A stretch of DNA of 64,000 bases from Anthoceros angustus (taxonomy: Eukaryota; Plantae; Anthocerotophyta), in assembly GCA_010909165.1 (NCBI GenBank), contig MU008170.1, positions 992,001-1,056,000 on the forward strand. The letters are read 5' to 3'. Under the pieces are notes generated by a model. It had not been told where the DNA came from, did not search any database, and was given only the letters and a program-made list of their open reading frames with translations. The translations under genes and the position numbers were made by a program. Positions 2,366 through 49,950 of this stretch are shown piece by piece (position 1 is the first letter of the stretch; each line of letters begins with the position of its first letter).

Positions 2366-2378
2366 CACTACAAGAAAA
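2366..2378 (+). repeat. CACTA left terminal inverted repeat
   Basis: CACTACAAGAAAA read directly, preceded by CTA. Confidence 0.9.
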
Positions 2379-2667
2379 TGAGGGTTTTAGCGGTTTTACA
2401 ACGGGTGTTACAACGTGGCGTTGTAAACCGAGAGCTTCATGGCGTTGTAAACCGAGAGCTTCATGGCGTTGTAAAATTGCGACATGGCGGTTCGGTGCCA
2501 TGTCATTAAAGTGGTGATGTGGCGCCACATCATCGCCACATCACCAAGTGATGACATGGCATGTTGTTGCCACATGGCCCTTCATTGCCACATCATCAGG
2601 TGATGACATGGCATAATTTGATGACATGGCCCTCATTGCCACATCACCATGTGATGACGTGGTGCCA

Positions 2668-4260
2668 TTTTACAAAACCATTTACAACATCCCAATTGCA
2701 AAAGGAATTACAACATCTAAGTTTGAGACGTCTCGGTGTGGGTACAACGCGCTTTACAACGACCTGTTTTACAAAACCATTTACAACATCCCAATTGCAA
2801 AAGGAATTACAACATCTAAGTTTGAGACGTCTCGGTGTGGGTACAACGCGCTTTACAACGACCTGTTTTACAAAACCATCTACAACATCCCAATTGCAAA
2901 AGCAATTACAACATCTAAGTTTGAGACGTCTCGGTGTGGGTACAACGCTTTACAACGACCTGTTTTACAAAACCATCTACAACATCCCAATTGCAAAAGC
3001 AATTACAACATCTAAGTTTGAGAGGCGTCTCGGTGGGTACAACGCGCTTTACAACGACTTTTACAAAACCATCTACAACATCCCAATTGCAAGCAATTAC
3101 AACATCTAAGTTTGAGACGTCTGGGGTGGGTACAACGCGCTTTACAACGACTGTTTTACAAAACCATCTACAACATCCCAATTGCAAAAGCAATTACAAC
3201 ATCTAAGTTTGAGACGTCTCGGTGCGGGTACAACGCGCTTTACAACGACCTGTTTTACAAAACCATCTACAACATCCCAATTGCAAAAGAAATTACAACA
3301 TCTAAGTTTGAGACGTCTCGGTGCGGGTACAACGCGCTTTTACAACGACCTGTTTTACAAAACCATCTACAACATCCCAATTGCAAAAGAAATTACAACA
3401 TCTAAGTTTGAGACGTCTCGGTGCGGGTACAACGCGCTTTACAACGACCTGTTTTACAAAACCATCTACAACATCCCAATTGCAAAAGCAATTACAACAT
3501 CTAAGTTTGACGTCTCGGTGCGGGTACAACGCTTTACAACGACTTTTACAAAACCATCTACAACATCCCAATTGCAAAAGCAATTACAACATCTAAGTTT
3601 GAGGCGTCTCTGTGGGTACGCGCTTTACAACGACCTGTTTTACAAAACCATCTACAACATCCCAATTGCAAAAGCAATTACAACATCTAAGTTTGAGACG
3701 TCTCGGTGTGGGTACAACGCGCTTTACAACGACCTGTTTTACAAAACCATCTACAACATCCCAATTGCAAAAGCAATTACAACATCTAAGTTTGAGACGT
3801 CTCGGTGGGTACAACGCGCTTTACAACGACCTGTTTTACAAAACCATCTACAACATCCCAATTGCGAAAGCAATTACAACATCTAAGTTTGAGACGTCTC
3901 GGTGTGGGTACAACGCTTTACACGACTGCTTTACAAAACCATCTACAACATCCCAATTGCAAAAGCAATTACAACATCTAAGTTTGAGACGCCTCGGTGG
4001 GTACAACGCGCTTTACAACGACTGCTTTACAAAACCATCTACAACATCCCAATTGCAAAAGCAATTACAACATCTAAGTTTGAGACGTCGGGTACAACGC
4101 TTTACAACGACTGCTTTACAAAACCATCTACAACATCCCAATTGAAAGCAATTACAACATCTAAGTTTGAGACGCCCTGTGGGTACAACGCGCTTTACAA
4201 CGACTGCTTTACAAAACCATCTACAACATCCCAATTGAAAGCAATTACAACATTTAAATT
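2668..4260 (+). repeat. Left subterminal array, 99-bp unit x ~16
   Basis: Period of 99 between TTTACAACGACC at 2753 and 2852; each unit carries ~5 TACAAC/TACAAA motifs, typical of CACTA subterminal repeats. Confidence 0.9.
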
Positions 4261-11508: not shown

Positions 11509-12409
11509 TTAAGCGACCCGGCCGTCAAGTGCGTTTTGAGCAGCGATGGCGGACAACTGGCGAGCCGGCCGAGAACCATCCGGAGGTGATGGCGCCGACA
11601 ACTGGCGAGCCGGCCGAGGACCTTCCGGAGGTGGATCCCAGTCGGAGGAGATGCGTGATGAAGAGGAGGTGATGCACATGAATTGTGCAAACTTTGACCC
11701 TTGTGACAAGGGTTGTGTAACATTGCGTCCGCTTCCTAGCCTTCCTCGGAGAAAGAGAAGGGTCCCACCCTTCCGGATGGAACTCGTCCTTGTTTTTGGT
11801 CACATGCTTCCACGCTGCACGCCTTGATGCAGCTATCATCACAGTTGGTACTACTCTCGATCCGGGGTCTCCAAGGGCTTACTTTTGTGAAGAAAGCGGA
11901 ACTCGGATGACTCGACTTGACCGGGAGAAATCTGATCTTGTGCCCGAACCTAATCATCTCCTTCTATCGTAAGTGTAAAAGTCTGAGTGATCTGCTTTGC
12001 ATGATAAATGCTAATAAGGTAGATTTTTGTTGAGGCTCAAGGTTTTAATCGGCATCACGAATGGAGCATGACGAGCCACCTTACGCTTTTGTGAAGACTA
12101 TGCTCCTGATACGGACCAGGAGCCGGATCTGAGTGATAATGAACTCATCACAAATGTGGTTTCTGTAGTCTACCCAAGTCACGCGAGGTTGGCAAAGACG
12201 ATCTGCCTATCAGACTGATGTAAAGCTGTCTGAGCTTTTGATATAAAGTTGCTCACACATTTCACAATCTTGAGTCCCACGCAAATAAGGAAAGGCTTGC
12301 GCCCAGCCTTAAGTAAGCTAAGGCTATATCAATAGCACACTACGGTGCTTTACAACGAATGCTTTGCAAATTGCCCAAACTGTTGCAATGCTAGCTAGCG
12401 CTTTGGACC

Positions 12410-12990
12410 GACTGCCTGCACTTGTAAGAGGCCAAGCCGCCTTCCATCGTGCGTGGCGAGGGCCTTCCATTGTGCGTGGCGAGGGCCTTCTCATAGCAAG
12501 GGTCAGCACCATCCGCGCGATGCTAGATAGCTACAAGTCCGTTGCAGTAGGTCGGTGCTCTTTGCAAAGCGTTTTCAGAGTATTGTCGAAGTTGCATGCA
12601 ATTGCTCATGATTAGAATTGGCTGCTGCGAGTGCGTTGCAAATGTTGCTGCGAGTGCGTTGATAAGAGAGCGTTGCAAATTTCCCAAACCGATTTGCAAC
12701 GCCTCGTGTTGTAAAGCGCTTTGGATTGACCGCCTAACAAGCACCGACTGTAAGAGGCCTTTCTCTTGTCCCAGCTACTAACCATCCACTACATAGCTAG
12801 AAGGGCCTTCCATCGTGCGTGGCGAGGGCCTTCTAGTAGCAAGGGTCAATAAAAAACGGTGCACACCTAAATCGACCATCCGCGCGATGCTAGATAGCTA
12901 CAAGTCCGTTGCAGCAGTCTATGCTCTTTGTAAAGCGTTTTGAGTATCGCGTTATCGGTTGCATGGAATTGCTCTAGATTAGAATTGGCT
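12410..12990. repeat. Local direct duplications upstream of TnpD (GGCCTTCCATCGTGCGTGGCGAGGGCCTTC; CATCCGCGCGATGCTAGATAGCTACAAGTCCGTTGCAG)
   Basis: Segments near 12440-12620 recur near 12800-12990. Confidence 0.7.
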
Positions 12991-13143
12991 CGATTTATGC
13001 GGATTTACGCCGACACGGAGGTTGGAGCGAGGGCCGGAGCACTTCATCGAAGGTAGCCTGCACTTTCCAACGTGCTCAGTGAAGACAGGGCAAGTGTTGT
13101 CGAGCTTAAGCTAACCCACGATCATTGTTGAGGGTAGGTCCTT

Positions 13144-13447
13144 ATGGATCGCGTTCGTAGATTTAAGCGCCCAAATATCCAATATATTTTCCAAAAATGT
13201 TGGTGCAAAGAGTGCAAGGGGCGAGTTCAGCGAGCTAACCAAGTACGTAAACATTTGCGCAAGAATGGACCTTACCTCCCACAGAATGAAGTCCCCGGTG
13301 GAGAACCGCAAGGAGATGAAGAACGAGGAGGAGAAGGAGGACGAGGAGGAGAAGAACAACGAGGAGGAGAAGGAGGACGAGGAGAAGGAGGAGGAGAGAA
13401 GGAGGAGAAGAAATAGCGAACAAGGAGAACCACCCGTAGCCACAACT
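13144..13447 (+). CDS. tnpD: TnpD exon 1: transposase-associated domain plus Gly/Glu linker (one frameshift)
   Basis: CWCKECKGRVQRANQVRKHLRKNG resembles the CACTA transposase-associated CxCxxC...VxxHL motif; followed by a GTGAGT donor at 13448. Confidence 0.65.
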
Positions 13448-13667
13448 GTGAGTTGCAGTCCTTTTCTTCTATGCTAGGAAATAAACTAATGAAGTAATTA
13501 TGGAGCCCTTTTCTTCTATGCTAGAAAATACAATAATAAAGCAATTATATAATATTATCTATAGAATAATTCTGATGTGGCATACTAATTGTGGTAAGTA
13601 TGTTTCTCTTGTTATATTAAAGGTAGTTTAATTATTCATATGTGTAATTATGGTTGTTTTTTTATAG

Positions 13668-14490
13668 TTGGAAGGAGTTTCGAGCTGTTTGCATGTTATA
13701 ACAAGTACAGAACGTAGGAGTGGACACATGGTTTTACGGTGTAGGAAAACGTTTGAATGGAAAGGGCGGACATGGACCCTTTATTGCACCTCCTTATCAT
13801 CCAAAAGAGGGGAAGATCCAAAGTCTCATGATGCTATTGTTTTATACAAGCATCTTTTGAAAGGCGTGTACCCTAGAGAATGGGAATGTGGGAGAAGGGA
13901 CCTATTCCTATTAACAAGTCATTTCTATATTGGGGCGAAGGTGGATAGTGAAGGAGGCAACAAACCCGGCCATGGGGTTGGGTTTATTTTCCATGGAGAA
14001 AATCGTAGTGAGAAAAGATAATGTGAATGGAGTTCCTTTGTTTGTGTTTGGGGTCCAAAGTATACAGGAGAATATAACAAGATAGTGAACTACAACAGTT
14101 ACCGATTTCAAGTATGCATTGACTTTCAATAGACTCGCGTAAAGATGTTAATGATGGCCCAATTGAGTACCTCGATGGGCATGTTGCATATGGGAATGTG
14201 GCGGGATATATGAATAGTAGTAGTGGAAATATCGCAATCAAGCAAAATTGCATTTGGGAAGAAAGGTCGGATGGGCATGAGCTACTAAGTGACGACCATC
14301 TTGATTGGATTTGCACTTGGGCGGTGAGGACCATTAATGCTGGGAAGAGTTGTTTGTTGATTACAATTGGTATAACCCGAACCATTTGAAGCCAAAAGGA
14401 AGGCCGTGCGGAAGAGTACATAGACACATTAAATTACGCATGATGGAGTGGAAGAAATTGAAGGCAAAGTTGATGCACGAGGATGTGGAA
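13668..14490 (+). pseudogene. Exon encoding a SET-like domain within the CACTA transposase gene (about 4 frameshifts)
   Basis: AT-rich intron 13448-13667 ends in TTTTTATAG; joined frames give GHGLGLFSME...YLDGHVAYGNVAGYMNSS...NCIWEE...WAVRTINAGEELFVDYNW, i.e. the SET GxGLF, GNxAxxxN(H/S)S and GEELxxDY motifs. Confidence 0.8.
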
Positions 14491-14754
14491 TAGTTTTTGT
14501 TGTAGGATGTAGAAGAGTTGATGTTGAGGGTCTTGTACCTTGTGTATATTGACTATATCTCGCAACAAAACAATTAGTATATCTCGACTTGACTTCTTAA
14601 CCTTTTAGTTTTGCATGTTGTTCAATATTTTCCTTAATAATAGTGGTTATACTAAAGTTATTAAATTATAATATAATTTTTCTATATAGTACTACAATAT
14701 TTTATATACTTATTTGATATTTATTTTGTGCGTGTGATTGAATAATCGATTGAA

Positions 14755-17700
14755 GAGGAACAAGATTTTATTGAGGTTGATGATCATTTTGAGGTTGATG
14801 AAGAACATGTCAACATTCATCCCGACGAACAAGTGACCATAGAGTTGGTGGAGGCACTTGGTGGGGTTTCGCATCGCAAATGACTAAAGAACAGTCGATT
14901 CCTTGCACGAGGAATTAAAGGCGATGCACACCGCAGAACTACGCCTCTATGGGTTGGAGCCGAGATAAGTTTATTGGCATTCATTTTATTGTTATTGAAC
15001 ATCCAAAGGAGGCATGGCTGGTCGGATGCATCTTTGAATTCAATTTTATCATTACTAGGCAAATTAGGCCTCCCGATTGGCAACAAGTTGCCAAAAGTAG
15101 GGCTGAAATTAGAAAGATGCTTAAGGGGTTTGGCCTAACATATACATCCATACATGCTTGTCAAGATGATTGTATGTTGTTCACAGGCGAGTTTTCTGAA
15201 TTGCTATTCTGCAAGATGTGTGGGAAACATAGGTATCGAACTGACACGAAGAACGAGCGTGTACCCGTTAAGCTACTTCGATATTTTCCATTGATTCCTA
15301 GATTGAAACAAATGTTTAGATGTCCGGAGCTAGCAAGTATGATGTCATGGCACGCCACAAATAAGTCTAATGATGGGATTATGCGGGTCCCATCAGATAG
15401 CTATGCATGGGAACATGTGGACAACACTTATCCAGAGTTTGCTAAGGAGACGCGCAACATTCGATTAGGACTTGCTACGGATGGGATTAATCCCTTTGGG
15501 CACCAAAGTTCTAGGTATTCTATATGGCCTGTGCTTCTTGTCAATTATAACCTGCCTCCTTGGTTATCTATCAAGAATGGGCATATATTGTTGTCAATGA
15601 TTATTCCCGGTCCGAAGCAAGTCAAGATGCGATATATATTTTCAACCACTCATCGAAGAGTTGAAGGTACTGTGGGAGGAAGGTGTGGTCGTACAAGATG
15701 CTTCTATGGCTATTGGAAATGCTCAAAGACAATTTAAATTGAAGGCCTTATTGTTGTGGACGATGCATGATTATCCAGGATATTCTTTCACTTCTAAAAT
15801 GCAAACAAAAGGGAAGCGGGCATGTCCAATATGTTGGGACAAATTAGAAGCAAGAAAGTCAATGTTCACAAACAAAATGACGTATGATAAGAATTTTAGA
15901 AAAAAATTTACCAGAGGAACACAAGTTTAGAGTGGAAGAGCGGGATTCATTCAATGGAAAGGTGAGATGGAAATTATTCATCCGGACTATGCACCAACTC
16001 CGGAGGATATTATGATCGAAAGCTTTAACCGGAAATATGCAAAAGACAATGGTGAAGACAGGGTGTTACTAGCGACGAGCCTTCAATTTTCGGGAGCTTC
16101 CATCTTGGGAGGTATGTATGCATGCATATGGGGTCTTGCAAGTATTACCCTTTTCAAGAATATTTTAATTATATTATTGGTAGCATCGGTAGGTAGACTA
16201 ATAGCTATTCATGAAGGTTAACTTTTAGTCATGCTATTTGGTGGTTGCGATATTGTTGATCGACACTTATTTGATATCATGCACATTGGAAAGAATGTAA
16301 GTCAATGATTTTGGCACACATATGTGGGAATCAAGATTCCCTTGGTAGTCGAGAGATCTTGAGTATTCAAATACCAAACAAGATTGGTGGCCCCATGCGA
16401 GGCCATCGCTGTTGGAAGGAGACAAAGAGGCCAAAACATTGTAAATGGGGTGCAAGGTAACTGGCGAACCAGGGACGGACATTTATAACGACACCAAGAC
16501 TCGGTTCTTGGACATGGCAAAAGAGGCGAATGTATGCTAATGCAGAGGAAAAATTGAGAACAAGGATTTGCAGCATACGTACTCCTGGTATGGGTCAAAT
16601 TTGAGCGTTGTTTTTCTAAAGGGAGAGAAGAGGAATTTGTGGTTAAAGTCTCATGATCATCACCATCATTACGGATTTGTGGCCAATTGTCTTGAAAGGA
16701 TTAATACATCATGATGTTCACAAGGCTATATGTGATCTTGCCGAGCTATTCGGTGGCTTTGTTCAAAAGAAATTGCGAAGGATGAAATTCCAGCTATGAA
16801 GGTGAAAAGTGTGGAGATCATGTGTGTGTTGGAGGGAATTTCCAACGACTTTTCCGACAAGTCAAGTACATGTTGTTGTTCATCTTGTGCGGGAGGTTGA
16901 ATTATGTGGACCAACTCGATATCGATGGATGTATTTCTTAGAAAGGCACATGAAAGTGTTAAAGGGACTTGTTCGACGAAAGCCCGACCGAAGGTAGCAT
17001 GGCTTTAGGATACTTAGCACAAGAGATAATGTTTTATAGCTCGAGTTCTTTGGAAATACACATGAAGAGGCACCAAGAGTGTGGAAATCGAAGATGATGT
17101 CACCCAATGTGGGTGTTATTGCAAGGAATGGCAAAATTATGACCGAATGATGTGGAAATGCAAGATGAGGAAAGTGTTAGTGGAAAACTCAGCTGTACTC
17201 AAAAATGGCGAAAAGTGTATGACGGTATAGACGACGAGCAACGTCCTTTTGCGTAATGGTTGATAGATGAAGTTAAAGTAGCGAAGAAAGGGAAATGCGG
17301 TACAAACCTATGGGTTGGATGTGGCGCAATTGTGCGAGGACCTCCTCGGTGCGATCATATAAAATGATGTGGGCATATGGAAATCATATAAGGACTATAG
17401 ATGCGAGATAGGGAAAGAATACATGTGATAGCATTATAAAACATCTATATAGCCAAGCATGTGTTTCACATCGCGGGGACACCGAACCTATTATAGCAGA
17501 TTTTCCCTATCTTTGGAAAGGTGGAAAAGATTTTGGAGGTGGACTTAGGGCCGTCTAAAAAGTAAATGTGTTGAAGGTGAGATGGTTCAAGGCTCAATGG
17601 AACAAAGAGCACACACCATCAAAACAGATACATCTCGTATGTTCATGGTTAACGATGTCATGTTATCCAATGATAAGTTGGAGGATGAGCCATTTGTACT

Positions 17701-17900
17701 AGTATCGGAGAAAGTGGAGCAAGTCTTTTGTATGAGAATTCTAAAATGCATGGAAAAATTGTGGTGGGTACAAGCGCACGTGGAAGACGATAGTACAAGG
17801 TGAGGCTCAAGACGAGGATAACATGAGTCAAGATGATGAGGATGGATATCATAGGTGAGGATGATGAAGACAATGATAGCGTGAGCGATAATGACCAATG
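14755..17900 (+). pseudogene. tnpD: CACTA TnpD transposase (Transposase_21 + DUF4218 + DUF4216 regions), frameshifted
   Basis: HACQDDCMLF, LRYFPLIPRLKQMF, RNIRLGLATDGINPFG, YSIWPVLLVNYNLPPW, LLWTMHDYPGY, HVVVHLVREVELCGPTRYRWMYFLERHMKVLKGLVR, DEPFVLVSEKVEQVF. Confidence 0.92.
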
Positions 17901-18340
17901 AGTTACATAGTAGAGTTGGAGTAATAGACTTGTTATGTGGAAGGAGAAGGCGGGGAAGGGAGATGATAGAGGGATAAGGAGTGGGGAGACGATAGAGGGA
18001 TAAGGAGTGGAGAGGGTGGGAGGATAGATAGGTAATTGATAGGTTGAAAAATATTTTAAAGCTTTTCTTATAAGTATAAAAAGTATCCCAAGTCTTAAAT
18101 ATTTCACTTATTTAATTATAATTATGGTGAGTACAAGCGCACGTGGAAGACGATAGTACAAGGTGAGGATGATGAGGATGCGGATATCATAGGTGAGGAT
18201 GATGAAGATGACGATAGTATGAGCGGATGATGACCAATGAGTTACATAGTAGAGTTGGAGTAATAGACATGTTATGCGGGGCAAGGAAGGGTACAATGCG
18301 AAAGAGGTAAAGAGGGAGAGCGATGGGAGGATAGATAGAT
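17763..18340. repeat. Direct duplication of the TnpD 3' end (~360-bp period)
   Basis: GTACAAGCGCACGTGGAAGACGATAGTACAAGGTGAGG...ATGACCAATGAGTTACATAGTAGAG near 17768 and 18131. Confidence 0.85.
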
Positions 18341-19599
18341 AGTTGATATAGGTTGGTGTTCAAAAATATTTTTAGTTTTTCTTAAAACATGCTAGGTCAC
18401 CGTTGGGGTTCCGTTGGGAGCACCATGGATGTGGGCATATGGAAATCATCAATGTTGCAAAGCGTGATACCATGGTCCATTTCATCGAATGCATCCAAAA
18501 ATATTTTAAAGCTTTCATCGAATGCATCCAAGGCAACGGACTTGAACTCGGATGCATATTAATGCGACATGGGTACGACATCCGAGATAGTTAGTGCGTA
18601 GGCTCTTGCCACCGCGCGTCCTTCTTCAAATTGCACATCCACATCGTTGGACTTCCGTTGGGGTTCCGTTGGGGTTCCGTTGGGGTTGGGGTTCTACTCG
18701 ATGCGGATATCATAGGTGAGGATGATGACCGATTGTTGCGATGGCGTAGTTCTGCGCCAATTTCGATGATCGACCTCTTCCGGCTTCTTGGTAGCGGTGA
18801 TGGCCGCACTAGAATTGGGCCACAAATCAATCTCTTTTCTTTGAGTGTGGTATCGATCTTGGCCGTTTGCCTCGGCGAGTCCCGGAAAGAGTAAAGAAGA
18901 CAAAGACGTTGATGATTTCTGCGGCGGATACCCGCCTTTGTTCCGATGGCACTCAAGCGGGAGCCGTTTTGTATCGGGTTCCACCTTTCACGGCTTCTTG
19001 TGGCGGGCGGCGGTGTACTCGGGCCGCCTTTGGCTTGTCCTGGAAAACCGCAGAGCCTTCGACCATTGTTGAGGACACATAGTAAACAAGGTGAGGACAT
19101 AGCCCGCTTGCTTCACAAGATGGTTGTGATACAAGTCTCCCGTTGCCGCCATGCGAACAAGTGGCGCCATCTGGCGGCTTGGGGTTCCCGCCCGATGTAG
19201 GGAAGTTGTCCCTACTCAAATTGGCGCTAAGTACCTCGAGAGGAGTCGGTGCGAATCCTCCTTCCGAGTTTTGGAGAATAAGTCGACAAATTTTGGACAC
19301 TCGGAGAGCAGAGAACGACGCCCACGCCACCGGATCATCTTATGGAGGAGGAATGGGAGCACCATGGATGTGGTCTTGGCGAGTGGGGATAATCGCTTTC
19401 TTGATTCAAGAATCTCGGTTCTCTCTCGGTTCATCCATCATATGCTATGATGGACATTGAACGACGACCCCTACGTTACATGGATCGTCTTAATTGGCAA
19501 GTGGGGATGACTGTCTTGATTTCAAAGAACCTCGGTTTAGTCTTCACTATGATGGACAACTAGTGGTGATTCCTAACCTTTCTTGTAGTCTTGCTTGCT

Positions 19600-19900
19600 T
19601 TGTCGGGGATATGGTGACATGGAATGCCCTTATGGGTACAAGCAAGGGCTCGGCTGCTGGAGAATGTAGTGGTGGGCACCTACCGTGGACATGTATGCAA
19701 AATTTTGGTGAATCGGAAAATGCCGCCAAGTTTTTGGCTTGAGCGACCCATGAAAGAGGATGCAAAATATGGTGAGCTGGAAGATGCAAAAGGGGCAATG
19801 CTGCACTCACAAATTGTGGAAGGAACGCGATTGCACTCATAGATGGTGGTGCATGTCTCTTGCCTAAGGGTGTTGCCCGATTTTGCAAATGGAATCGAAT
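19600..19900 (+). pseudogene. Scrambled PLS-type PPR gene fragments
   Basis: DMVTWNALMG, LENVVVGT..DMYAKFGESENA, LHSQIVEG in different frames. Confidence 0.6.
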
Positions 19901-20639
19901 GTCATGCGCAGAAGAGATCCTTCAATGGCTTGCCGAATCAGCAAAATTCGAGCATTAAGAAGGCGGTGCAACATGCTCCACACACCATCATTCACCATGC
20001 ATGTCAACAACCTCCTCCTTCCAAGCTTGGGCAATAATGTCTAACAAAGACCGCCTCTAAACGCGCAGGCCGTAATCACGGCACTGGAAGAGAACTCAAG
20101 CTTGAAGTCTTCCATGCGTCTTCCACATCTCTCCATCGTTGAAAATGCCATTCCCCAACCGCTCTTCCGATGCGGAAGGATTCCTTGCCCGCATGAACTT
20201 GATGGTGCGTTCACATTTTGAAGCGAGACAAACACATGTGTGTCACAAGCATCCAAGATGCTCGAATCGCATCCCATTAGGTAGTACACCGTTAGGATTC
20301 ACGATCCATTACCTTAGGGAAGTTCTCGGTTGCCTCTTAGAATGTGCCAATTTTACCCCTGATCTACCTAACATGCATATATAGCCCTACATGCAATATC
20401 TAGAAAACGGAATTCCCATGGTTCAAGGAAGTTGCCTTCCTCGGCCCTCGAAATAGGTTTCATCTACATGCTACTTTTCCCAAGGACCAAGGAACATCCT
20501 TCCGAAACCCAAGACCAAGGACTAGGTTTCATCTACATACCATTTTCCCAAGGACCAAGGAACATCCTTCCGAAACCCAAGACCAAGGACTAGGTTTCTA
20601 TCTACATGCTACTTTTCCCAAGGACCAAGGAACATCATT

Positions 20640-21020
20640 CAACTTGTTTATTGCCAAGTCTGGTGGACATGTACGCAAACCGTGGTGAATCGGAAGAGGC
20701 AAACACGGTTTTCGATAGGTTAAGTGAAAGGATGTCGTGACATGGACGGCCCGATAGTTGGGTATGCAAATCATGGGCTTGGCCAAGAGGCGCTTGTTCA
20801 GATGGACAAATGGAGAAGGAGGGCGATTGTGGGCAACCATGTTACCTTTGCTTGCCTCAAGGTGGTGCATGTCTCTTGCACAAGGTGGTGCACTCACAAA
20901 TTGTGGAGAGAGGCTAGATAACACACTTGTGGGCACTTGCCCGGTGGACATGTAGGCAAAGTGTGGCGAAGTAGAAGATGCGCATCAAGTTTTCAATGCT
21001 TGAGCATTCTCGCCTTGCAA
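20640..21020 (+). pseudogene. PLS PPR fragment, unit B copy 1 (5' part deleted)
   Basis: VDMYANRGESEEANTVFDRL..DVVTW...VGYANHGLGQEAL..QM. Confidence 0.8.
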
Positions 21021-22368
21021 ACGTGCGATCTTGCAACTTTGTTGTCCACTCGCATTTTCTCATGGCTTCAACATCGAGCATAATGCCACACTACATCTCT
21101 TTCACATTTCACATGGATGCAACATGCTCCACACACCATCATTCAACTTGTTTGACTAAATGACACATGAAGAGCAAACCAAAAGAGCGAGGAGAAGAGG
21201 CTGATGGAAGCGAGATCGGTAGAATACCCAAGTCGCTTTAATGGCTCCAGTACTTTAGTGTATTCATGGATGCTAGTTCATATGGCTTCTCGCATCAAGT
21301 TTTCAATGCTTGAGCATTCTCGCCTTGTCATACATTTTACAATGTGAATTTGGTGAAGTTGTTTGACTAAATGACACATGAAGAGGCGCATGTCTCTTGC
21401 CTCAAGGTGGTGCATGTCTCTTGCTTGAAGGTGGTGCATCTCTTGCCCGAGGGTGTTGTGGAGTCGGGTGAAAGCTGCAGATGCATTGCGTCCGCTTCCT
21501 AACTCTTGCTATGATTTATGTGAGAGCAAGCAAGTGTGCCGCCTTGGGGAACCGTGGCTTGTGTCTTGAGGATTGAGGAGGTGGCTCGTGAATTTGTCAA
21601 TGGCACTACGCACAATGTGAATTTGTCAATGGCACCGAAGCCCGATCGAGGCGATACAACGTGCAAGATCGCTTTGCAATGGACTTTGTATATGAGACTA
21701 CGTTGTGAATTTGGTGTAAAACGCGAGGCTGATCCGGCCTTGTCATACATTTTACAACATACAAGTGCGCTTTACAGCGGGCTGTGTTGTAAATTAGACT
21801 ATGTTGTAAAAGTTGTGGGAGGCCTATCTTGGCCTCTCTTAAACGCTTTACAATGTACAGTGAGGTTTGCAATGGATCGTGTTGTAAATTAGATTAGGTT
21901 ATGCGTATGTTGTAAAACATGAGAGAGGCGATCTGGCCGTCTCAAACATTTTACAACATACAAGTGCGCTTTGCAATGGACCGTGTTGTAAAACACGGTC
22001 CGTTGCAAAGCCCAATTGAATGCTTTGTCTTCGAAGCTGGGAGGAGGTGACCGATCGGAGAGAAGCTGGGAGGAGGTGACTGATCGGACAGAGGTGTGTT
22101 TGGGTATACCTCTTCACTCCCACTTGTTGATCATTTTGGAAAGTGATGCTCCAACAACCGGATCATCTCCAGTCCTTGTAGGATGGAGTCGGGTGAAAGC
22201 TGCAGATGCATTGCGTTCAGCTGCGTTACGCCCCCCAGCTCCTCGCTTCGGTATATATTCGAGCGTGCCAGTGAGAAACCAGTCCTCACCAGGTGCGTTA
22301 TATTCCTCTTCTTCATCTTCACGCTCTGTGCAATTGGAGAAGGGGTTGTGGAGCGTAACCTGATCGAG

Positions 22369-38634: not shown

Positions 38635-39850
38635 TTCTAGCTTCTTTGGGACGTTTTTCCTCTTTTGTTTTGTTTTCCTTTGTTATTTTGGGTTGGGTTG
38701 TAGTTGAAGGTTCGGTCTCTTTTCGGATAATTTTGAGGTTTTTGGTTGTTTTGTCTCTAGTTTCTTATTTTGGGAGGTTATCAATGCTATTTTCCAATTT
38801 TTGGGTTGGGTTGTAGCTTTAGGTTCCAATCTCTTTTGATTTTGTGAGGGCTTTTGGTTCTCTTGTTTCTAGCTTCTTTAGGTTCCAATCTCTTTTGGTT
38901 TTTGAGGGCTTTTGGTTCTCTTGTTTCTAGATTCTTTAGGTTCCAATCTCTTATCGGATTTTTGAGGGCTTTTGGTTCTCTTGTTTCTAGCCGTTTTTGG
39001 GAGGTTATTTCCTCTTTTGTTTATCTTTTCCTTTGTTATTTTGGGTTGGGTTGTAGCTGAAGGTTCGAGTCTCTTTTGATTTTGTGAGGGCTTTTGGTTG
39101 TTTTGTCTTTAGCTTCTTATTTTGGGAGGTTATCATTGTTATTTTTTATTTTGGGTTGGGTTGTAGCTAAAGGTTCCAATCTCTTTTCGGATGTTTGTGG
39201 GGCTTTTGGTTCTCTTGTTTCTTTTTGTGTGAGGTTATTTTTTATTTTGCTTTTCTTTTTGGGTTGGATTGTAGTTGAAGGGTCCAATCTCTTTTGATTT
39301 TGTGAGGGCTTTTGGTTCTTGTATCTAGCTTCTTTAGGTTCCAATCTCTTTTCGGATTTTTGTGAGGGCTTTTGGTTCTCTTGTTTCTAGCTTTAAGTTC
39401 CAATCTCTTTTCGGATTTTTGTGAGGGCTTTTTGGTTCTCTTGTTTCTAGCTTCTTTAGGTTCCAATCTCTTTTCGGATTTTTGTGAGGGCTTTTTGGTT
39501 CTCTTGTTTCTAGCTTCTTATTTTATTTTTGTGAGGTTTTTTGATTGTTTTGTCTTTAGCTTCTTATTTTTTGGATTTTTGTGAGGCTTTTGGTTCTCTT
39601 GTTTCTTTTTTGGGAGGTTATCATTGTTATTTTTTATGTTTTTGGTTGGGTTGTAGTTGAAGGTTCCAATCGGTCTTTAGATTTTGTGAGGTTTTTGATT
39701 GTTTTGTTTCTAGCTTCTTTTTGGGAGGTTATTTTGTTATTGTTTTCCTTTTGGGTTGGATTGTAGCTGAAGGTTCCATCACTTTTGGATTTTTGAGGGC
39801 TTTTTGGTTCTAGTGTCTCTTTTGGGAGGTTATTTATTTTGCTTTTCTTT
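38635..39850. repeat. T-rich ~60-bp satellite block (also ~43090-44425, ~47740-48590, ~49950-51110, ~54370-55530)
   Basis: TTTTGTGAGGGCTTTTGGTTCTCTTGTTTCTAGCTTCTTTAGGTTCCAATCTCTTTTCGGA monomer and variants. Confidence 0.9.
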
Positions 39851-40612
39851 TGTGATCTTTTGGTTGTTAGTGGATATCTTCCATTGCTTATGATCATGAG
39901 ATATCTACGTGTGGTCCTCGTCTAATCAAAGCAATGGGAGTAGGCAAGAGACTTGGCCTCGAGCTTTGCAACTCTCGAGTTTCGGGACCGCCTCGGAGGC
40001 GTCTCTCAACAAGTGCAAGAGCACTTGTTTTGTCCCATGTTGGATTACATTCCCACACATCTTTTCGAGCAAGCTTTCCCCATAAAAACAAGGAGATCCC
40101 TACATGTATATAGCGCCCAAGTCATATGGGGTCCCCAAAGCCGACCTCCCACCACATGAGGCTCAACGTGCACCACCTCACTTTTGCTGTCGGCAATAAC
40201 CAGAGCTTCCCTCCATAAAGATAGGGCTCAACTAAAGTTGGGGCCCCTTAGACCGCCAACCTCATATTCTGGTGCCCCACCACCCCTCGGCGCAAACTTT
40301 TGCTCCGCTTTCTTTTTGGGTTGTAGAAACCCTTCTAAATAGCACGCGCCTTAAGTCGGGGCCCCTTAGACCGCCAACCTTGACCCTTGGTGCCCCACCA
40401 CCCCGAGCAAACTACTTCTCCCCAGCCCCACCATAAATCCCCACCTCCACATGTATAGCGCCCACCTTAAGTCAAGGCCCCTCGAAATGCCAACCTCATA
40501 TTCACGGTGCCCCAACACCCCAGTCGCTCTTCTCCTTCGCTTTCCTTTTGGTTTATAACTTCCCTCAAGAAGGAGTGTCGCTTCCCTCAAAACGATGCGT
40601 CGGAATGTAATC

Positions 40613-41020
40613 CAACATGGGTATGCTCACACACGGGATGGCAATTTCCAGCCAAAGTCGAAGAAATTTCAGGGTGGAGACTTCATTTACTTGCAGAGTC
40701 AAACAGGAGATACCTTCGACACCGCTAGCAGCCGACGCATGCTGCAAGTGAAGGAGGTTAGACCTAATGGGGGTACTCTTGCTACGGTGATGGGCCGACG
40801 ATCGACAACATGAAGAATTGTGCGGTCTATCACCTCCCAAACCTGGACCCAACTATTGTTACCAGCGATTGGGTCCCTCCGCTTGATTACCCATGCCAAG
40901 TATGTAGGCCTCCGGATGATACAGGCGATGCCGTTTTGTGATCACTGTGATGGTGGTTACCATGTGTTTTGCCTAAATCCACCACTAGTTGAGGTCCCGG
41001 ATCACTGTTGTACAAGAAAA
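40613..41020 (+). pseudogene. Ty3/Gypsy integrase C-terminus plus PHD finger fragment (also ~45172-45560, ~51902-52290)
   Basis: YAHTRDGNFQPKSKKFQGGDFIYLQ...LQVKEVRPNG...NMKNCAVYHLP...YPCQVCRPPDD...FCDHCDGGYHVFCLNPPLVEVP; same architecture as the pol tail at 60561-61129. Confidence 0.8.
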
Positions 41021-42572
41021 CCAGCTACAACGGGCATAAACCATCGAGCTTCAGGGGGGGAGGCGGGGTGGAGAGGCAGAGGACTCATTTTTGCTACATG
41101 TTAGATGAGAGTTGGGACATACTGGACAGCCCCAATGTTCGATGAGATAGCTAGGACATACTCCGGACAAGTATGCTACACTCCAGCTCGGCTATACTCG
41201 GGACCACCTCAGCTATACTCGGGGCAGTCCCATGGCAACAAGTATACTGGGCGGCCCAACCTCCATACCACGATCCCTGGTATACTCGGGGCAGTCATAG
41301 TCCCAACTCTATTATTCTGATCTACTTTAGTGATCAGCCCCAGAACAACTATACTTGGGATGGTCCCGAGAGAACACTAAGGACAAGCGATTAGGGATGG
41401 AGTGAGTGACCCTTTCGGCCAAGTGTTTGAGTGTCTTTGGCGGAATTGCTATGGTGCGTGAAGAGTGTGCGGATGGGATGGTTCTAGTGGCAATTTCACC
41501 TCTTTCTATGATAAGCTCGTCGGCACTCTAAAACTCCTACTCTTGTTGTGGTTAGAGGTAGCACGAAGAGCTCCCACTAATGTCGTCAATGCGTGTTGTG
41601 ACCAATGTCAAGGGACAAACTATAGGAGGAAGCGGGGTAATCTATGCTCAAGAGAAAGACACGAGGAAGAGCCAAAGCACGACTTCCACCCCAACTACGT
41701 AGAGATACTAAGGAGAAGAAGTTGGGACGGAAGGTCCTTGTTCTTTGATGACACCAACTCAAGATCGACACCTTGTAACTTGTAGAAATGATCACCACCG
41801 CTAACAACACACAATAGTCGATTCTGTTTTAAACTAAGCGGACACTTGAATCTGTAGGAGTCTAAGACTCAAGCATCTCCTTTGAATAAGTCATGTTTTT
41901 ACCTTAGGGAGGGCTTTAGTAAGCGGTCGGTGCATTAGATCCCGTGGGGATGTATTCAAGAGATCGACTTAAAGCGCATCTCGGATGAAATGGTAATGAA
42001 TCTCGATGTCCTTGCGTGCACCGGGACTCATGGCGCCGCGATTGTTGCGTCCGAGATTGTCGTGTATGCGTGTCGAGTGTCCTCTCCCAAGACTCGATGC
42101 CGCGAGTGGAGCGATAACTTAAGAAGGTTCCACATAACGTATAAAAATATGGTATATGGATTATATAAAATGTGTTACATAGGACTTTGAGCCTCCTTTG
42201 GCTTTGGCTTCTATGGATTGAGTATTTGAACTAAGTTTTCTAGCTAGTGACCATGAAGCTTCATGTCATCGTAATGACTTCGTCCAGCCATATGGTGATG
42301 GCATGTGAGTCATTCTTGCACCTTCACCAGCTCATACCTCGCATGACACCGCCGCGTGTGTCGCACCTTCCACGCCGATGGTTCCCAATGCTCTGCACTT
42401 GGGCACCACCGCAACGGCACACTCCGACACTTCAGCCCGGCGACAACCTCACCGATGAAAACACGAGGCACGCATGGAAAGCTAACCCCTCACCATCCCT
42501 CCCTTCACAATTGTCGTGCAAACCGGATCCTCTATATGAGAGGCGCCTCACGAACCGAGCCAAGAAGGGTCG

Positions 42573-42850
42573 CTTGCGCTTTCATCCACTAAAGTTGAGT
42601 ATAAGGCAGGCATGGAAGGAGTTAGAGTGGGAAAGGCAACTTTTGGAATGAATCCACTTACCTCAAAGTGCTCCCACTAAGCTTCTATGTGAAAGCATGT
42701 AGGCTATTGCCCTTTTTCCAATCCTTGGTTTCATGCAAGAACCAAGCACATTGAGCTAAACCACCATTATATCCATGGCGTCAAAGGGGCATTGTGAAAG
42801 TGGAATACATTAGTCTTGATGAGAATCTGACTAATATTTTTACAAAGGGC
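42573..42850 (+). pseudogene. Copia RNase H fragment in unit A (also ~47225-47505, ~53850-54126)
   Basis: Colinear with 1722-2008. Confidence 0.85.
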
Positions 42851-45800
42851 TGCCAAAGCCAAAGCATTTCAAGCATATGGCTGCCCTTGGGCTCGGAGTG
42901 TTCACTCGCCCGTCGAGTTGATATCTACCTTGTTGTCGCCGGCTCTGATTCTTATTGCCTCTAGGGCTCTGGAGCTGCTCGCCTTCTTCACTCAAAATGA
43001 CGTATTCATCGATCGGTACTCTCAAGGATGAAGCTACACTATGAAATCTAGGCGTGAGAGGTATCGGACATATGGGTCATGTTTTAGGAGGTCATATCTT
43101 TTTTTCTTTTTTTGTGATTTCTTGGTTGGGTTGTAGCTGAAGGTTCTAGTCATTTTCGCTTTCTTTGTGAGGATTTTGGTTTGTTTTGTTTCTAGCCGTT
43201 CTTTGGGACGTTTTTCCTCTTTTGTTTTGTTTTCCTTTGTTATTTTGGGTTGGGTTGTAGTTGAAGGTTCGGTCTCTTTTCGGATAATTTTGAGGGTTTT
43301 TGGTTGTTTTGTCTCTAGTTTCTTATTTTGGGAGGTTATCAATGCTATTTTCCAATTTTTGGGTTGGGTTGTAGCTTTAGGTTCCAATCTCTTTTGATTT
43401 TGTGAGGGCTTTTGGTTCTCTTGTTTCTAGCTTTAGGTTCCAATCTCTTTTTGGATTTTTGTGAGGGCTTTTGGTTCTCTTGTTTCTAGATTCTTTAGGT
43501 TCCAATCTCTTTTGATTTTGTGAGGGCTTTTGGTTCTCTTGTTTCTAACCGTTTTGGGAGGTTATTTCCTCTTTTGTTTATCTTTTTTTTTGGGTTGTAT
43601 GAAGGTTCTAGTGTCTCTTTTGATTTTGTGAGGGCTTTTGGTTGTTTTGTCTTTAGCTTCTTATTTTGGGAGGTTATCATTGTTATTTTTATTTTGGGTT
43701 GGGTTGTAGCTAAAGGTTCCAATCTCTTTTCGGATGTTTGTGGGGCTTTTGGTTCTCTTGTTTCTAGCTTCTTTTTGGGAGGTTATTTTTGTTATTGTTT
43801 TCCTTTTGGGTTGGATTGTAGCTAAGGTCCAATCTCTTTTCGGATTTTTGTGAGGGCTTTTGGTTCTCTTGTATCTAGCTTTAGGTTCCAATCTCTTTTT
43901 TTTGTGAGGTTTTTGGTTCTCTTGTTTCTAGCTTTAAGTTCCAATCTCTTCGGATTTTGTGAGGGCTTTTGGTTCTCTTGTATCTAGCTTCTTTAGGTTC
44001 CAATCTCTTTTCGGATTTTTGTGAGGGCTTTTGGTTCTCTTGTTTCTAGCTTTAAGTTCCAATCTCTTTTTTTTGTGAGGGCTTTTGGTTCTCTTGTTTC
44101 TAGCTTCTTTAGGTTCCAATCTCTTTTCGGATTTTGTGAGGGCTTTTGGTTCTCTTGTTTTATTTTGGGAGGTTATCATTATTATTTTTTATTTTTTGGT
44201 TGGGTTGTAGCTGAAGGTTCCAATCGGTCTTTAGATTTTTGTGAGGTTTTTTTGATTTTTTTGTTTCTAGCTTCTTTTTTGGGAGGTTATTTTTGTTATT
44301 GTTTTTCCTTTTGGGTTGGATTGTAGCTGAAGGTTCCAGTCACTTTTTGGATTTTTTGAGGGCCTTCGACCGTTTTGGTTCTAGTGTCTCTTTTTGGGAG
44401 GTTATTTATTTTTGCTTTTTCTTTTGTGATCTTTTGGTTGTTAGTGGATATCTTCCATTGCGTATGATCATGAGATATCTACGTGTGGTCCTACGTCTAA
44501 TCAAAGCAATGGGAGTAGGCAAGAGACTTGGCCTCGAGAGCTTTGCAACTCTCGAGTTTCGGGACCGCCTCGGGAGGCGTCTCTCAACAAGTGCAAGAGC
44601 ACTTGTTTTTGGTCCCATGTTGGATTACATTCCACACATCTTTTCGAGCAAGCTTTCCCCATAAAAACAAGGAGATCCCTACATGTATATAGCGCCCAAG
44701 TCATATTGGGTCCCCAAAGCCGACCTCCCACCACATGAGGCTCAACGTGCACACCTCACTTTTGCTGTCAATAACCACGAGCTTCCCTCCATAAAGATAG
44801 GGCTCAACTAAAGTTGGGGCCCCTTAGACCGCCAACCTCATATTCTGGTGCCCCACCACCCCTCGGCGCAAACTTTTGCTCCGCTTTCTTTTTGGGTTTG
44901 TAGAAACCCTTCTAAATAGCACGCCTTAAGTCGGGGCCCCTTAGACCGCCAACCTTGACCCTTGGTGCCCCACCACCCCAGCCTTTCCATCGCGGTAACC
45001 ATAAATCCCCACCTCCACATGTATAGCGCCCACCTTAAGTCAAGGCCCCTCGAAACGCCAACCTCATATTCTGGTGCCCCAACACCCCGGCGCTCTTCTC
45101 CTTGCTTTCCTTTTGGTTTATAACTTCCCTCAAGAAGGAGTGTCCCTCAAAACGATGTGTCGAATGTAATCCAACATGGGTATGCTCACACACGAATGGC
45201 AATTTCCAGCCAAAGTCGAAGAAATTTCGGTGGAGACTTCATTTACTTGCGTGTCAAGCAGAGATACCTTGACACCGCTAGCAGCATCTTGCAAGTGAAG
45301 GAGGTTAGACCTAATGGGGTACTCTTGCTATGATGGGCCGCGACGATCGACAACATGAAGAATTGTGCGGTCTATCACCTCCCAAACTGGACCCAACTAT
45401 TGTTACCGATTGGGTCCCTCCGCTTGATTACCCATGCCAAGTATGTAGGCCTCCGGATGATACAGAGCGATGCCGTTTTGTGATCAACATGATGGTGGTT
45501 ACCATGTGTTTTGCCTAAATCCACCACTAGTTGAGGTCCGGATCACTATTGTACAAGAAAACCAGCTACGGGCATAAACCATCCAGCTTCAGGCGGGGAG
45601 CGGGTGGAGAGGAAGAGGACTCATTTTTGCTACATGTTAGATGAGCAGTTGGGACATACTCGGACAGCCCCAATGTTCGATGAGATAGCTAGGAGATCCC
45701 TACATGTATAGCGCCCACCTTAAGTCAAGGCCCCTCGGCGCCCAGCTATACTAGCGGCCCCTTTATACCGGAGTCCCATGGCAACAAGTATACTCGGGCG

Positions 45801-48800
45801 GCCCCAACCTCGGCCATACTTGGGATACAGCTACAGTATACTCGGGGATCATAGTCCCAACTCTAGCTTCTTTAGGTTCCAATCGGTCTTTAGATTTTGT
45901 GAGGGCTTTAGTGGGATCATCCCCAGAACAACTATACTTGGGATGGTCCCAGAGAGAACACTAAGGACACCGCTTAGGGATGGAGTGAGTGACCCTTCGG
46001 CCTCAAGTGTTTGAGTGTCTTTGGCCGGAATTGCTATGGTGCGTGAAGAGTGCAGATGGGATGGTTCTAGTGGCAATTTCACCTCTTTCTATGATAAGCT
46101 CGTCGGCACTCTAAAACTCCTCCTCTTGTTGTGGTTAGAGGTAGCACGAAGAGCTCCCACTAATTGTCGTGTTGTGACCAATGTCAAGGGACAAACTATA
46201 GGAGGCGGGGTAATCTATGCTTCAAGAGAAAGACGAGGAAGAGCCAAAGCACGACTTCCACCCCAACTACGTAGAGATACTAAGGAGAAGAAGTTGGGAC
46301 GAAGGTCCTTGTTCTTTGATGACACCAACTCAAGATCGACACCTTGTAGCTCAGAAATGATCACCGCTAACAACACACAATAGTCGATTCTGTTTTAAAC
46401 TAAGCGGACACTTGAATGTGAGAGTCTAAGACTCAAGCATCTCCTTTGAATAAGTCATGTTTTACCTTAGGGAGGGCTTTAGTAAGTCATGCATTAGATC
46501 CGTGGGGATGTATTCAAGACAGATCGACTTAAAGCGCATCTCGGATGAAATGGTAATGAATCTCGATGTCCTTAATGCGTGCACGGGACTCATGGCGCGC
46601 GATTGTTGCGTCCGAGATTGTCGTGTATGCGTGTCGGAGTGTCCTCTCCCAAGACTCGATGCCGCGAGTGGAGCGATAACTTAAGAAGGTTCCACATAAC
46701 GTATAAAAATATGGTATATGGATTATATAAAATGGGTTTAAAAAGGACTTTGAGCCTCCTTTGGCTTTGGCTTCTATGGATTGAGTATTTGAACTAAGTT
46801 TTCTAGCTAGTGACCATGAAGCTTCATGTCATCGTAATGACTTGGCTTTGGCTTCATGGATTGAGTATTTGAACTAAGTTTTCTAGCTAGTGACCATGAA
46901 GCCCATGTCATCGTAATGACTTCGTCCGTCGTACCATATGGTGATGGTGTGAGTCATTCTTGCACCTTCACCAGCTCATACCGCCAGCATGACACCGCCT
47001 CGCACTGTGTCGCACCTTCCACGTCGATCGGCCGTCCAATGCTCCGCACTTGGGCACCACCACGAACACTGCACACTCGACACTTCAGCCCGTGACAACC
47101 TCACCGATGAAAACACGAGGCACGCATGGAAAGCTAACCCCTCACCATCCCTCCCTTCACAATTGTCGTGCAAACCGGATCCTCTATGAGAGGCGCGCCT
47201 CACGAACCGAGCCAAGAGCACTCGCTTGCGCTTTCATCCACTAAAGTTGAGTATAAGGCCACAGCGGGCATGGAAGGAGTTAGAGTGGGAAAGGCAACTT
47301 TTGGAATGAATCCACTTACCTCAAAGTGCTCCACTAAGCTTCTATGTGAAAGCATGTAGGCTATTGCCCTTTCTCCAATCCTTGGTTTCATGCAAGAACC
47401 AAGCACATTGAGCTAAACCACCATTATATCCATGGCGCCGAAAGGGGCATTGTGAAAGTGGAATACATTAGTCTTGATGAGAATCAAATATTTTTACAAA
47501 GGGCCCGCCAAAGCCAAAGCATTTCAAGCATATGGCTGCCCTTGGGCTCAGTGTTCACTCGCCTATGTATCAGTTGATATCTACCTTGTGAGCGCCTGTT
47601 GATTCTTATTGCCTCTAGGGCTCTGGAGCTGCTCGCCTTCTTCTGCTCAAAATGACGTATTCATGATGGTAGTCTCTGGGGATGAAGCTACACTATGAAA
47701 TCTAGGCGTGAGAGGTAATTTCATATGGGTCATGTTTTAGGAGGTCATATCTTTTCTTTTCTTTGTGATTTCTTGGTTGGGTTGTAGTGAAGGTTCTAGT
47801 CATTTTCGCTTTCTTTGTGAGGATTTTTGGTTTGTTTTGTTTCTAGCCGTTTTGGGACGTTTTTCCTCTTTTGTTTTGTTTTCCTTTGTTATTTTTGGGT
47901 TGGGTTGTAGTTGAAGGTTCGGTCTCTTTTCGGATAATTTTGAGGTTTTTTGGTTGTTTTGTCTCTAGTTTCTTATTTTGGGAGGTTATCAATGCTATTT
48001 TCCAATTTTTGGGTTGGGTTGTAGCTTTAGGTTCCAATCTCTTTTCGGATGTTTGTGGGGGCTTTTGGTTCTCTTTTTCGCTTTTTGTGTGAGGTTATTT
48101 TTGTTATTGTTTTCCTTTTTGGATTGTAGCAAGGTCCAATCTCTTTTGATTTTTGTGAGGCTTTTGGTTCTCTTGTATCTAGCTTCTTTAGGTTCCAATC
48201 TCTTTTCGGATTTTTGTGAGGGCTTTTGGTTCTCTTGTTTAGCTTTAAGTTCCAATCTCTTTTCGGATTTTGTGAGGGCTTTTGGTTCTTGTTTCTAGCT
48301 TCTTTAGGTTCCAATCTCTTTTCGGATTTTGTGAGGGCTTTTGGTTCTCTTGTTTCTAGCTTCTTTAGGTTCCAATCTCTTTTCGGATTCAATCGGTCTT
48401 TAGATTTTTGTGAGGTTTTTTTGATTGTTTTGTTTCTAGCTTCTTTTGGGAGGTTATTTTTGTTATTGTTTTTCCTTTTGGGTTGGATTGTAGCTGAAGG
48501 TTCCAATCTCTTTTTGGATTTTTGAGGGCCTTGTTGGTTCTAGTGTCCTTTTGGGAGGTTATTTATTTTGCTTTTCTTTGTGATCTTTTGGTTGTTAGTG
48601 GATATCTTCCATTGCTTATGATCATGAGATATCTACGTGGTCCCACGTCTAATCAAAGCAATGGGAGTAGGCAGAGACTTGGCCTCGAGAGCTTTGCAAC
48701 TCTCGAGTTTCGGGACCGCCTCGGAGGCGTCTCTCAACAAGTGCAAGAGCACTTGTTTTGTCCCATGTTGGATTACATTCCCACACATCTTTTCGAGCAA

Positions 48801-49559: not shown

Positions 49560-49950
49560 GAAGAAATCAAACCAAATCCCTCACAGCGAAAAATGACTAG
49601 AACCTTCACTACAACAAAACCGATCACGAAGGATATACCTCAAAACATGACCCATATGATACCTCTCCCTAGATTTCTAGTGAACTATTCAGGACCTCAT
49701 CTTGATATCGTCATTTTGAGCGGGAAGGCGGGCAGCTCCGACTAGACTGAATTAACTAAACCCAACCCTTCTGATTCTCCCAAAATGGCTAAAGACCATA
49801 GCCCTCATCCAGGGCTGCTTGAGCTGCCCATGGGATGCGTAACCTGGCTAGAAACAGGAACCAGCCCTTCCGGGTTGGAACTACACTAGAAACGAGAACC
49901 ACTCTGGATCCAAGAGATTGAACCTAGCTGAAACAGAGACAGCCCTCACT
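49560..49950 (-). repeat. Short inverted, noisy copy of unit-A sequence
   Basis: AAAACATGACCCATATG and AAAATGACTAGAACCTTC are reverse complements of the 43070-43160 region. Confidence 0.75.

Follow-up and report, generated by a model that had tools for sequence, protein, structure and literature searches.

In SETMAR (Metnase), a gene of the host has captured a dead mariner transposase, and the SET and transposase parts, linked by splicing, make up one fused protein. SET domains are also carried by DNA transposons themselves. The Plavaka elements of red algae, which belong to the EnSpm/CACTA superfamily, have an accessory gene (PAG2) with a SET domain (PF00856) (bioRxiv 10.1101/2025.02.11.637652), while SET genes are attributed to the HarbingerS and MuDR elements of Phytophthora (as cited in PMC12730594) and captured SET domains to Helitrons (as cited in the Bostrychia preprint). 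Other transposons encode accessory proteins of a different nature, such as VANC of the VANDAL (MuDR) elements, an anti-silencing protein considered to influence the epigenetic state of the element that encodes it (as cited in PMC12730594). Furthermore, one CACTA unit, En/Spm, gives rise by alternative splicing to a Tnp2-type transposase and a smaller accessory protein sharing 5' sequence with it (PMC2613891). The subject of this analysis is a stretch of 64,000 nucleotides of the hornwort Anthoceros angustus (contig MU008170.1, positions 992,001 to 1,056,000, assembly GCA_010909165.1), hereafter the window, to which all coordinates refer unless a locus is named. On balance, its segment at 13144-14493 is taken to be a degenerate copy of an accessory coding unit in a Tnp2-type CACTA transposon lineage. 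When intact, such a unit would encode a small protein in which a linker connects the Transpos_assoc-like zinc finger of exon 1 to a compact SET domain with its own stop.

The order of a zinc finger exon, a SET exon with its own stop and a transposase, all on one strand, is found in the window and in five further element lineages from several samples (L004, L007, L009, L010-L015 and L016). The full order of zinc finger, SET, Transposase_21 and DUF4218, with DUF4216 where the contig reaches, is present in L009 (a degraded copy on a 530-kb contig), L010-L015 (one element seen in six samples) and L016 (a more distant subfamily, fully open; its transposase exons have 507, 299 and 292 codons). In L004, which belongs to the window-type subfamily, and L007, which belongs to a more distant one, the zinc finger, SET and the start of the transposase are followed by the contig end. 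The original prediction had placed a SET module in a CACTA family between the transposase-associated exon and the Transposase_21 exon, and all of these loci bear this out. It had also proposed that co-occurrence of SET with TnpD in other copies, and a ratio of nonsynonymous (dN) to synonymous (dS) substitution below one, be looked for. Both were found, the former in the five further lineages and the latter as a dN/dS of ~0.1–0.3 where dS is measurable; four window-type relatives gave dN values of 0.23-0.34, with dS saturated or >1. The relatives thus display a pattern of the kind expected under purifying selection. Carriage of SET beside the transposase in many copies and lineages is a feature of transposon accessory SET genes, and the SET-like module belongs to the CACTA family and not to this copy alone, in a linkage that is both real and old. 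A metagenome scan with the transposase gave five loci, one of them with an upstream flank. The L010-L015 sequences, identical in six metagenome samples, probably represent one genomic locus of one host. The transposase exons of this element are open, and nonsense codons lie in its zinc finger exon (..RDL(stop)LWE..) and SET exon (..FMG(stop)GLY..) (L010:5876-6741, and the same in L011-L015).

The coding unit and the transposase of the window comprise the following features:

13144-13290, + strand: exon 1 core, with an ATG (13144) and a Transpos_assoc-like zinc finger, CWCKECKG...HLRKNGPYLPQNE (PF13963 the top Pfam match, E = 0.012, subthreshold)
13291-13447, + strand: GA-rich, acidic, low-complexity exon 1 tail, ending at the donor ACAACT/GTGAGT (13447/13448) (sequence reading)
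13448-13667, + strand: intron-like AT-rich segment of 220 nt, GTGAGT ... TTTTTTATAG (sequence read directly)
13668-13974, + strand: pre-SET part in three frames, SGHMVLRCRK...YPREW, then GMWEKGPIPINKSFLYWG, then RRWIVKEATNPAM (aligns with L001, L008 and P0011)
13975-14125, + strand: N-terminal half of the SET core, GLGLF...LFVFG, PKYTGEYNKIV..YRF and KYALTFN (frame reading, family alignment)
14126-14341, + strand: C-terminal half of the SET core, YLDGHVAYGNVAGYMNSS ... WICTWAVRTINAG (HMMER matches to P0002 and P0004; tblastn E = 5e-4 to the L016 SET; alignments)
14342-14493, + strand: after a shift in a G-run, the tyrosine motif ELxxDY as EELFVDYNW, followed by a basic tail and the stop codon TAG, 14491-14493 (alignment with P0002 and with the C-terminal ends of L001 and L004)
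14494-14757, + strand: AT-rich spacer, lacking both an open frame and a further zinc finger (three-frame translation; phase-0 AG at 14756-14757)
14758-15071, + strand: acidic linker and TnpD N-terminal region, EEQDFIEVDD...IELVEALGG; RHGWSDASLNSILSLLGKLGLPIGNKLPK (matches the same region in L004, L007 and L016)
15072-15900, + strand: Transposase_21 (Tnp2) catalytic region (PF02992, E = 7e-36 and 1.4e-14; tblastn to L016 and L010)
16562-17513, + strand: DUF4218 and DUF4216-like transposase remnants, fragmented (PF13960, E = 2.5e-14; tblastn)

The PF02992 and DUF4218 portions of the transposase are both present on the same strand downstream of SET, as in CACTA/EnSpm elements. The Transposase_21 region is split into two frames near 15631, the linker region (14758-15071) has no ATG upstream of the linker and contains one stop and a frameshift, and the DUF4216-like remnants were located by tblastn at 17340-17513.

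Homologous proteins provide the evidence for the identity of the SET exon. Exhaustive searching of a representative set with HMMER, using an 87-amino acid piece of the window, gave four matches, of which P0002 and P0004 are true relatives. The other two (P0001 and P0003), both repetitive proteins, were rejected as spurious, and matches of P0004 in the ESM Atlas (unrelated bacterial clusters with GDSL lipase labels) were dismissed as noise. The pre-SET part of L001, used as a first query, retrieved nothing but L001 itself, and profile searches led to 71 homologous proteins, most of them 110-212 amino acids long and carrying PF00856. The resemblance of the exon to SET is not a matter of chance, as the pieces of the window align along their full length with this 71-member family; the piece at 14168-14344 also matches the intact relative L016 directly (tblastn E = 5e-4). 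Matches to PF00856 were obtained for P0002 (E = 0.0015), for the C-terminal piece of L001 (23.3 bits, threshold 22.4) and for the intact L007 protein (E = 3e-9 over the whole model). The family can therefore be assigned to PF00856, and the window copy by alignment only. A family profile that included the window pieces matched 68 PDB chains at E <= 0.01, the best being MLL1 (E = 2.9e-8 over the whole domain), and all 60 of the chains listed from these 68 are SET domain proteins, nearly all of them lysine methyltransferases. A first structure prediction from a 12-row alignment was discarded (predicted local distance difference test score, pLDDT, 44.9). The AlphaFold2 model of the intact relative P0017, built from 58 sequences, reached a pLDDT of 87.5, and its top Foldseek matches were SET8, MLL1, EZH2 and NSD1 (E ~1e-7, template modelling score up to 0.74). 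The family is thus predicted to adopt the SET beta-fold, as modelled on P0017 and not on the broken window copy.

The three SET motifs that had been predicted from the sequence of the window are present on its forward strand at the positions given, in a form that differs from the prediction in two respects. These motifs are GLGLF (13975-13989), YLDGHVAYGNVAGYMNSS (14168-14221) and AVRTINAG (~14318-14341), the last continued in the next frame by EELFVDYNW (14344-14370). The first had been given as GHGLGLF, which mixes two frames; a single frame (frame 1 of the window) reads NPAMGLGLF, a string identical in L001 and L008, and no join is needed. The second concerns the single G that was to be restored in a homopolymer. 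One added G in GGG 14342-14344 does join both parts of the last motif, but the SET exon is readable only as seven pieces, with at least six frame changes near 13882, 13931, 14050, 14108, 14125 and 14342. Four of the six breaks sit in G-runs (13882-84, 13931-34, 14050-53 and 14342-44), and one more G restores the reading of the relatives in each; the shifts of the pre-SET frame are those at 13882-13884 and 13931-13934. The remaining two are not of the homopolymer type, that near 14108 being a loss of ~11 nt which deletes a conserved PAIR before KYAL, and that near 14125 a frame shift. A 164-nt short-read contig from the same organism, with a word depth of 198, matches the window at 13774-13935 except for one added G behind 13881 (the comparison left out the repeat at 13314-13413). 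Either this G was lost in the assembly, or the family has many copies and the variant is private to this one. Across the 4.8 kb at 13100-17900 no run of G or C exceeds 4, and runs of A and T reach 7. This run-length pattern, together with the missing G in four G-runs of the SET exon, suggests systematic under-calling of homopolymers in the assembly. As assembled, the window copy is dead and can make neither a SET protein nor a transposase.

In terms of catalytic residues, the GxG loop that binds S-adenosylmethionine is present (MGLGLF, 13972-13989, aligning with GRGLF of MLL1), as is the catalytic tyrosine motif (EELFVDY, 14344-14364, aligning with EELTYDY of MLL1), which is reached after the frame change at 14342. 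The NH(S/C) motif is altered: where MLL1 has INHS, MNSS stands in the window and INSS in nearly all aligned members of the family, with the Asn retained and Ser in place of the His. No post-SET cysteine cluster was found, there being no CxCxxxxC in the tail of the window subfamily (a single Cys, in the window a basic tail of ~40 residues). Most family members end within ~15 residues of the YP(V/L)N end, and the window subfamily has the longer basic tail. Both the NSS reading and the lack of post-SET cysteines agree with what had been noted at the outset. The cysteine cluster is a trait of the SET1/MLL and SUV39 classes and is not universal. The NSS change does not settle activity, because the PR-type SET domains are also without the NH motif and include active enzymes.

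Exon 1 and the exon junctions indicate how the SET exon may be connected to the transposase. The zinc finger of the window reads CWCKECKG...HLRKNG, and the PF13963 region that it matches is also matched by L007 (E = 2.5e-4) and L001 (E = 0.085). PF13963 is the best Pfam match of what had been called a transposase-associated exon; however, the match is subthreshold, and the finger and the donor at 13447 are in different frames, so that exon 1 holds a shift within its GA-rich stretch. The donor at 13448 and the acceptor ending at 13667 are both in phase 0 as predicted, the former in its local frame (ACAACT/GTGAGT) and the latter (ttttttatag) with a TAG that is an in-frame stop bounding the open frame from 13668. 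The donors of exon 1 in the relatives are at the position corresponding to that of the window. Within the intron-like segment (13448-13560), a direct duplication of ~18 nt (ccttttcttctatgctag[ga]aaat) is present, with copies 54 nt apart.

In a SET-less relative (L017:1527-3334; transposase identity 49%), a single open frame runs from the zinc finger (RCPCVKC...) through the linker into TnpD. The finger that precedes SET is therefore the ancestral N-terminus of the transposase itself, and no second zinc finger was found between SET and TnpD in the SET-bearing elements. In four lineages, the zinc finger donor is kept after 'SIL' in phase 0 (GTTAGT, GTAAGT, GTACGT and GTATGC). The acceptors of the SET exon are likewise in phase 0 in L007, L010, L016 and the window, with the exception of L009, where the best acceptor is in phase 2. 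In L008 (110-130), the intron between exon 1 and SET has shrunk to 15 nt (gtaatgcctgaacag) that are read in frame, with the donor and acceptor ends kept. The intron seems to have been lost almost entirely, and the resulting junction, identical to the one expected in L001 and L004, corroborates the joining of exon 1 to SET in the window subfamily. At every locus a stop of its own closes the SET exon, at a variable position. Downstream, intron-like sequence gives way to the transposase exon at a (C/T)AG in phase 0, which in three lineages is a TAG stop bounding the frame; the exon begins with 28-59 open codons without ATG, the count running from the nearest preceding in-frame stop or acceptor up to the first ATG or linker motif. 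In the window, the spacer at 14494-14757 is probably the 3' part of the intron preceding this exon. The simplest reading of these splice phases, and the somewhat favoured one, is a single transcription unit with a shared first exon that is joined either to the SET exon or to the transposase exon. The wording 'splice isoform' in the original prediction fits these phases.

Several points weigh against this reading and against the window copy as its witness. With the exons and frame pieces of the window searched separately and not as one joined protein, Pfam returned no SET match for the window's own SET pieces, and a PDB search with the 87-amino acid piece returned only noise, with no threshold reached. 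Of the three profiles that had been recommended, PF02992 was matched (E = 7e-36), PF13963 fell short of the threshold and PF00856 gave no match to the window pieces. One run that was presumed to be RNA contains no sequence from the stretch and hence yields no junction or expression evidence. The splice sites were predicted by eye and phase only, and as the loci are related their agreement is not independent. The transposase acceptor of the window (gaagag/GAA) is weak, and the NSS found throughout the family in place of catalytic NH(S/C) leaves methyltransferase activity putative. Finally, the acidic linkers of L004 and L010 contain ATGs in frame, from which a transposase without a zinc finger could start.

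These ATGs, together with the stop that ends the SET exon in all loci, would also suit two independent genes, namely a zinc finger-SET gene which took over the finger exon and has its own terminator, and a finger-less transposase expressed from its own promoter (within the 250-550 bp spacer) from an internal ATG. Such an arrangement is less likely, though reasonable. L007 and L016 keep ~47 open codons without ATG upstream of the first Met, their frame opens exactly at a phase-0 acceptor-like (C/T)AG behind intron-like T-rich sequence, and the SET-less L017 retains the finger on its transposase; loss of the finger would remove a conserved transposase domain. A single three-part fusion of zinc finger, SET and TnpD, spliced from a donor just before the SET stop, is considerably less probable. 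A phase-0 GT does occur 2-9 codons before the stop in the window (GAT/GTGGAA, 14484/14485), L007, L010 and L016 (xxx/GTGAAT), and each would join in frame with the phase-0 transposase acceptor. However, it derives from the Val codon of the conserved ...VN end, and in the many members that end in ...YPLN, with Leu instead, a GT is not expected (judged from the protein alignment only); furthermore, L004 has no GT near the stop, GTGAAT and GTGGAA are weak donors and the stop is always present. For the same reasons, the stop in every locus and the poorly conserved upstream GT, the earlier proposal of a transposase with SET as an internal coding exon could not be upheld. A single acquisition of part of a host SET gene, confined to this copy, or a fortuitous resemblance, would accord with its heavily broken state and the lack of significant Pfam or PDB matches of its pieces, but has a negligible probability and can be dismissed because the same architecture recurs in five other element lineages, with 71 homologues, a family profile match to MLL1 and a dN/dS pattern of purifying selection.

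The flanks of the coding unit in the window include the following features:

12338-12357, + strand: candidate 5' terminus CACTACGGTGCTTTACAACG (unique in the window, none expected by chance)
After 12357 to ~12950, + strand: subterminal TTTACAAC/TTGCAA-type repeats (repeat motifs seen)
21700-22022, - strand: inverse-oriented subterminal repeats, GTTGTAAA / TTTACAA... (inverted pairs with 12692-12940; sequence read directly)

The terminus at 12338 reads CACTACGG, and 21700-22022 is the probable 3' subterminal region of the element. A 3' CACTA terminus or inverted repeat matching 12338 was searched for in the window and not found. No TnpA-like open reading frame was recognised at 17900-22000. Elsewhere in the window, a second CACTA-type terminus (CACTACAAGAAAATGAGGG) occurs at 2366, followed by short GTTGTAAA/TTTACAAC repeats and, at 2665-4118, by 14 tandem copies of a 97-99-bp unit; 2366-4120 has the appearance of subterminal sequence from a further element whose ends differ. 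Between 21600 and 36000, several segments of 140-300 bp (families D11, D13-D15 and D18-D20) recur at spacings of ~4.5 and 6.2 kb with 96-100% identity, and a 62-nt inverted pair lies at 21957 and 32783. They suggest that a young repeat, tandem or segmental, adjoins the 3' side of the CACTA element. Further downstream (38650-55530), four or five T-rich blocks of 57-120-bp repeats, with an AT skew down to -0.43 and a period of ~4.5-6.6 kb, suggest a tandem array of a larger unit.

The SET exon lies between the ancestral N-terminal zinc finger exon and the exon that starts the transposase body. If the transcription unit with a shared first exon is as described, it would sit inside the transposase transcription unit, and we infer that one promoter and one first exon could serve two products. 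Splicing of exon 1 to the SET exon would give a zinc finger-SET protein, and skipping of the SET exon an ordinary zinc finger-TnpD transposase, in parallel with TnpA and TnpD of En/Spm from one transcript. With the same zinc finger on both products, the SET protein may be brought to the binding places of the transposase. There it could bind S-adenosylmethionine and transfer a methyl group to a lysine, whether of a histone, of the transposase or of a host factor, at or near transposase-recognised sites, and methylation could set the chromatin state of the element or regulate transposition, with counter-silencing, self-regulation or targeting as the effect. A changed or lost activity is also possible, given the family-wide NSS. 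The proposal that two proteins from one first exon deliver a lysine methyltransferase-like module to the sites of the transposase, as a self-targeted modifier of chromatin or of the transposase, is put forward tentatively and with somewhat less confidence than the gene structure on which it builds. If true, the modifier would have been built by exon insertion into the transposase gene of a land-plant CACTA element. Transposons carrying their own chromatin enzymes are rare and bear on how mobile DNA escapes or shapes host silencing. The distinctive point is the position of the SET exon, by which one DNA-recognition module would be common to the cutter and the putative writer. The NHS-to-NSS change across the family raises the question of whether the product is an active enzyme, one of changed specificity or a reader-like pseudoenzyme. 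Intact relatives such as L016 offer usable material for experiments, the window copy being only a decayed witness.

In a literature search, no paper was found that describes a land-plant Tnp2-type CACTA element with a zinc finger-SET exon. The initial view that no SET-bearing CACTA had been described does not hold, given the SET accessory gene of Plavaka (bioRxiv 10.1101/2025.02.11.637652); SET-bearing elements are already reported from oomycetes and red algae, and the novelty, as far as the reports found go, lies in the conserved SET exon of a land-plant CACTA lineage of the Tnp2 type. Like the present unit, PAG2 is a SET accessory gene inside a DNA transposon of the CACTA superfamily, long conserved and with a proposed role in the element's own chromatin (bioRxiv 10.1101/2025.02.11.637652). 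In PAG2, however, SET is fused to an N6-adenine DNA methylase (PF01555), and the gene is one of three separate accessory genes in giant elements, whereas here a compact SET is joined to the zinc finger exon of the transposase in a land-plant Tnp2-type CACTA (the two systems being compared by description). The HarbingerS, MuDR and Helitron elements are similarly cited as DNA transposons with a SET histone-lysine-methyltransferase accessory gene, but belong to other superfamilies and other hosts (oomycetes), and the citing texts describe no exon shared with the transposase. VANC differs in having no SET domain, in acting through DNA hypomethylation and in showing no sequence relation. SETMAR resembles the locus in uniting SET and a transposase domain at one place, yet here SET resides on a mobile multi-copy element and has its own stop; a continuous SET-transposase frame like that of SETMAR is not seen, as a stop follows SET in all loci with no conserved donor before it. 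Lastly, the TnpA of En/Spm is a DNA-binding protein encoded downstream of the transposase open reading frame, whereas in the present family the SET exon lies upstream of the transposase body, to be included or skipped by the splicing inferred here.

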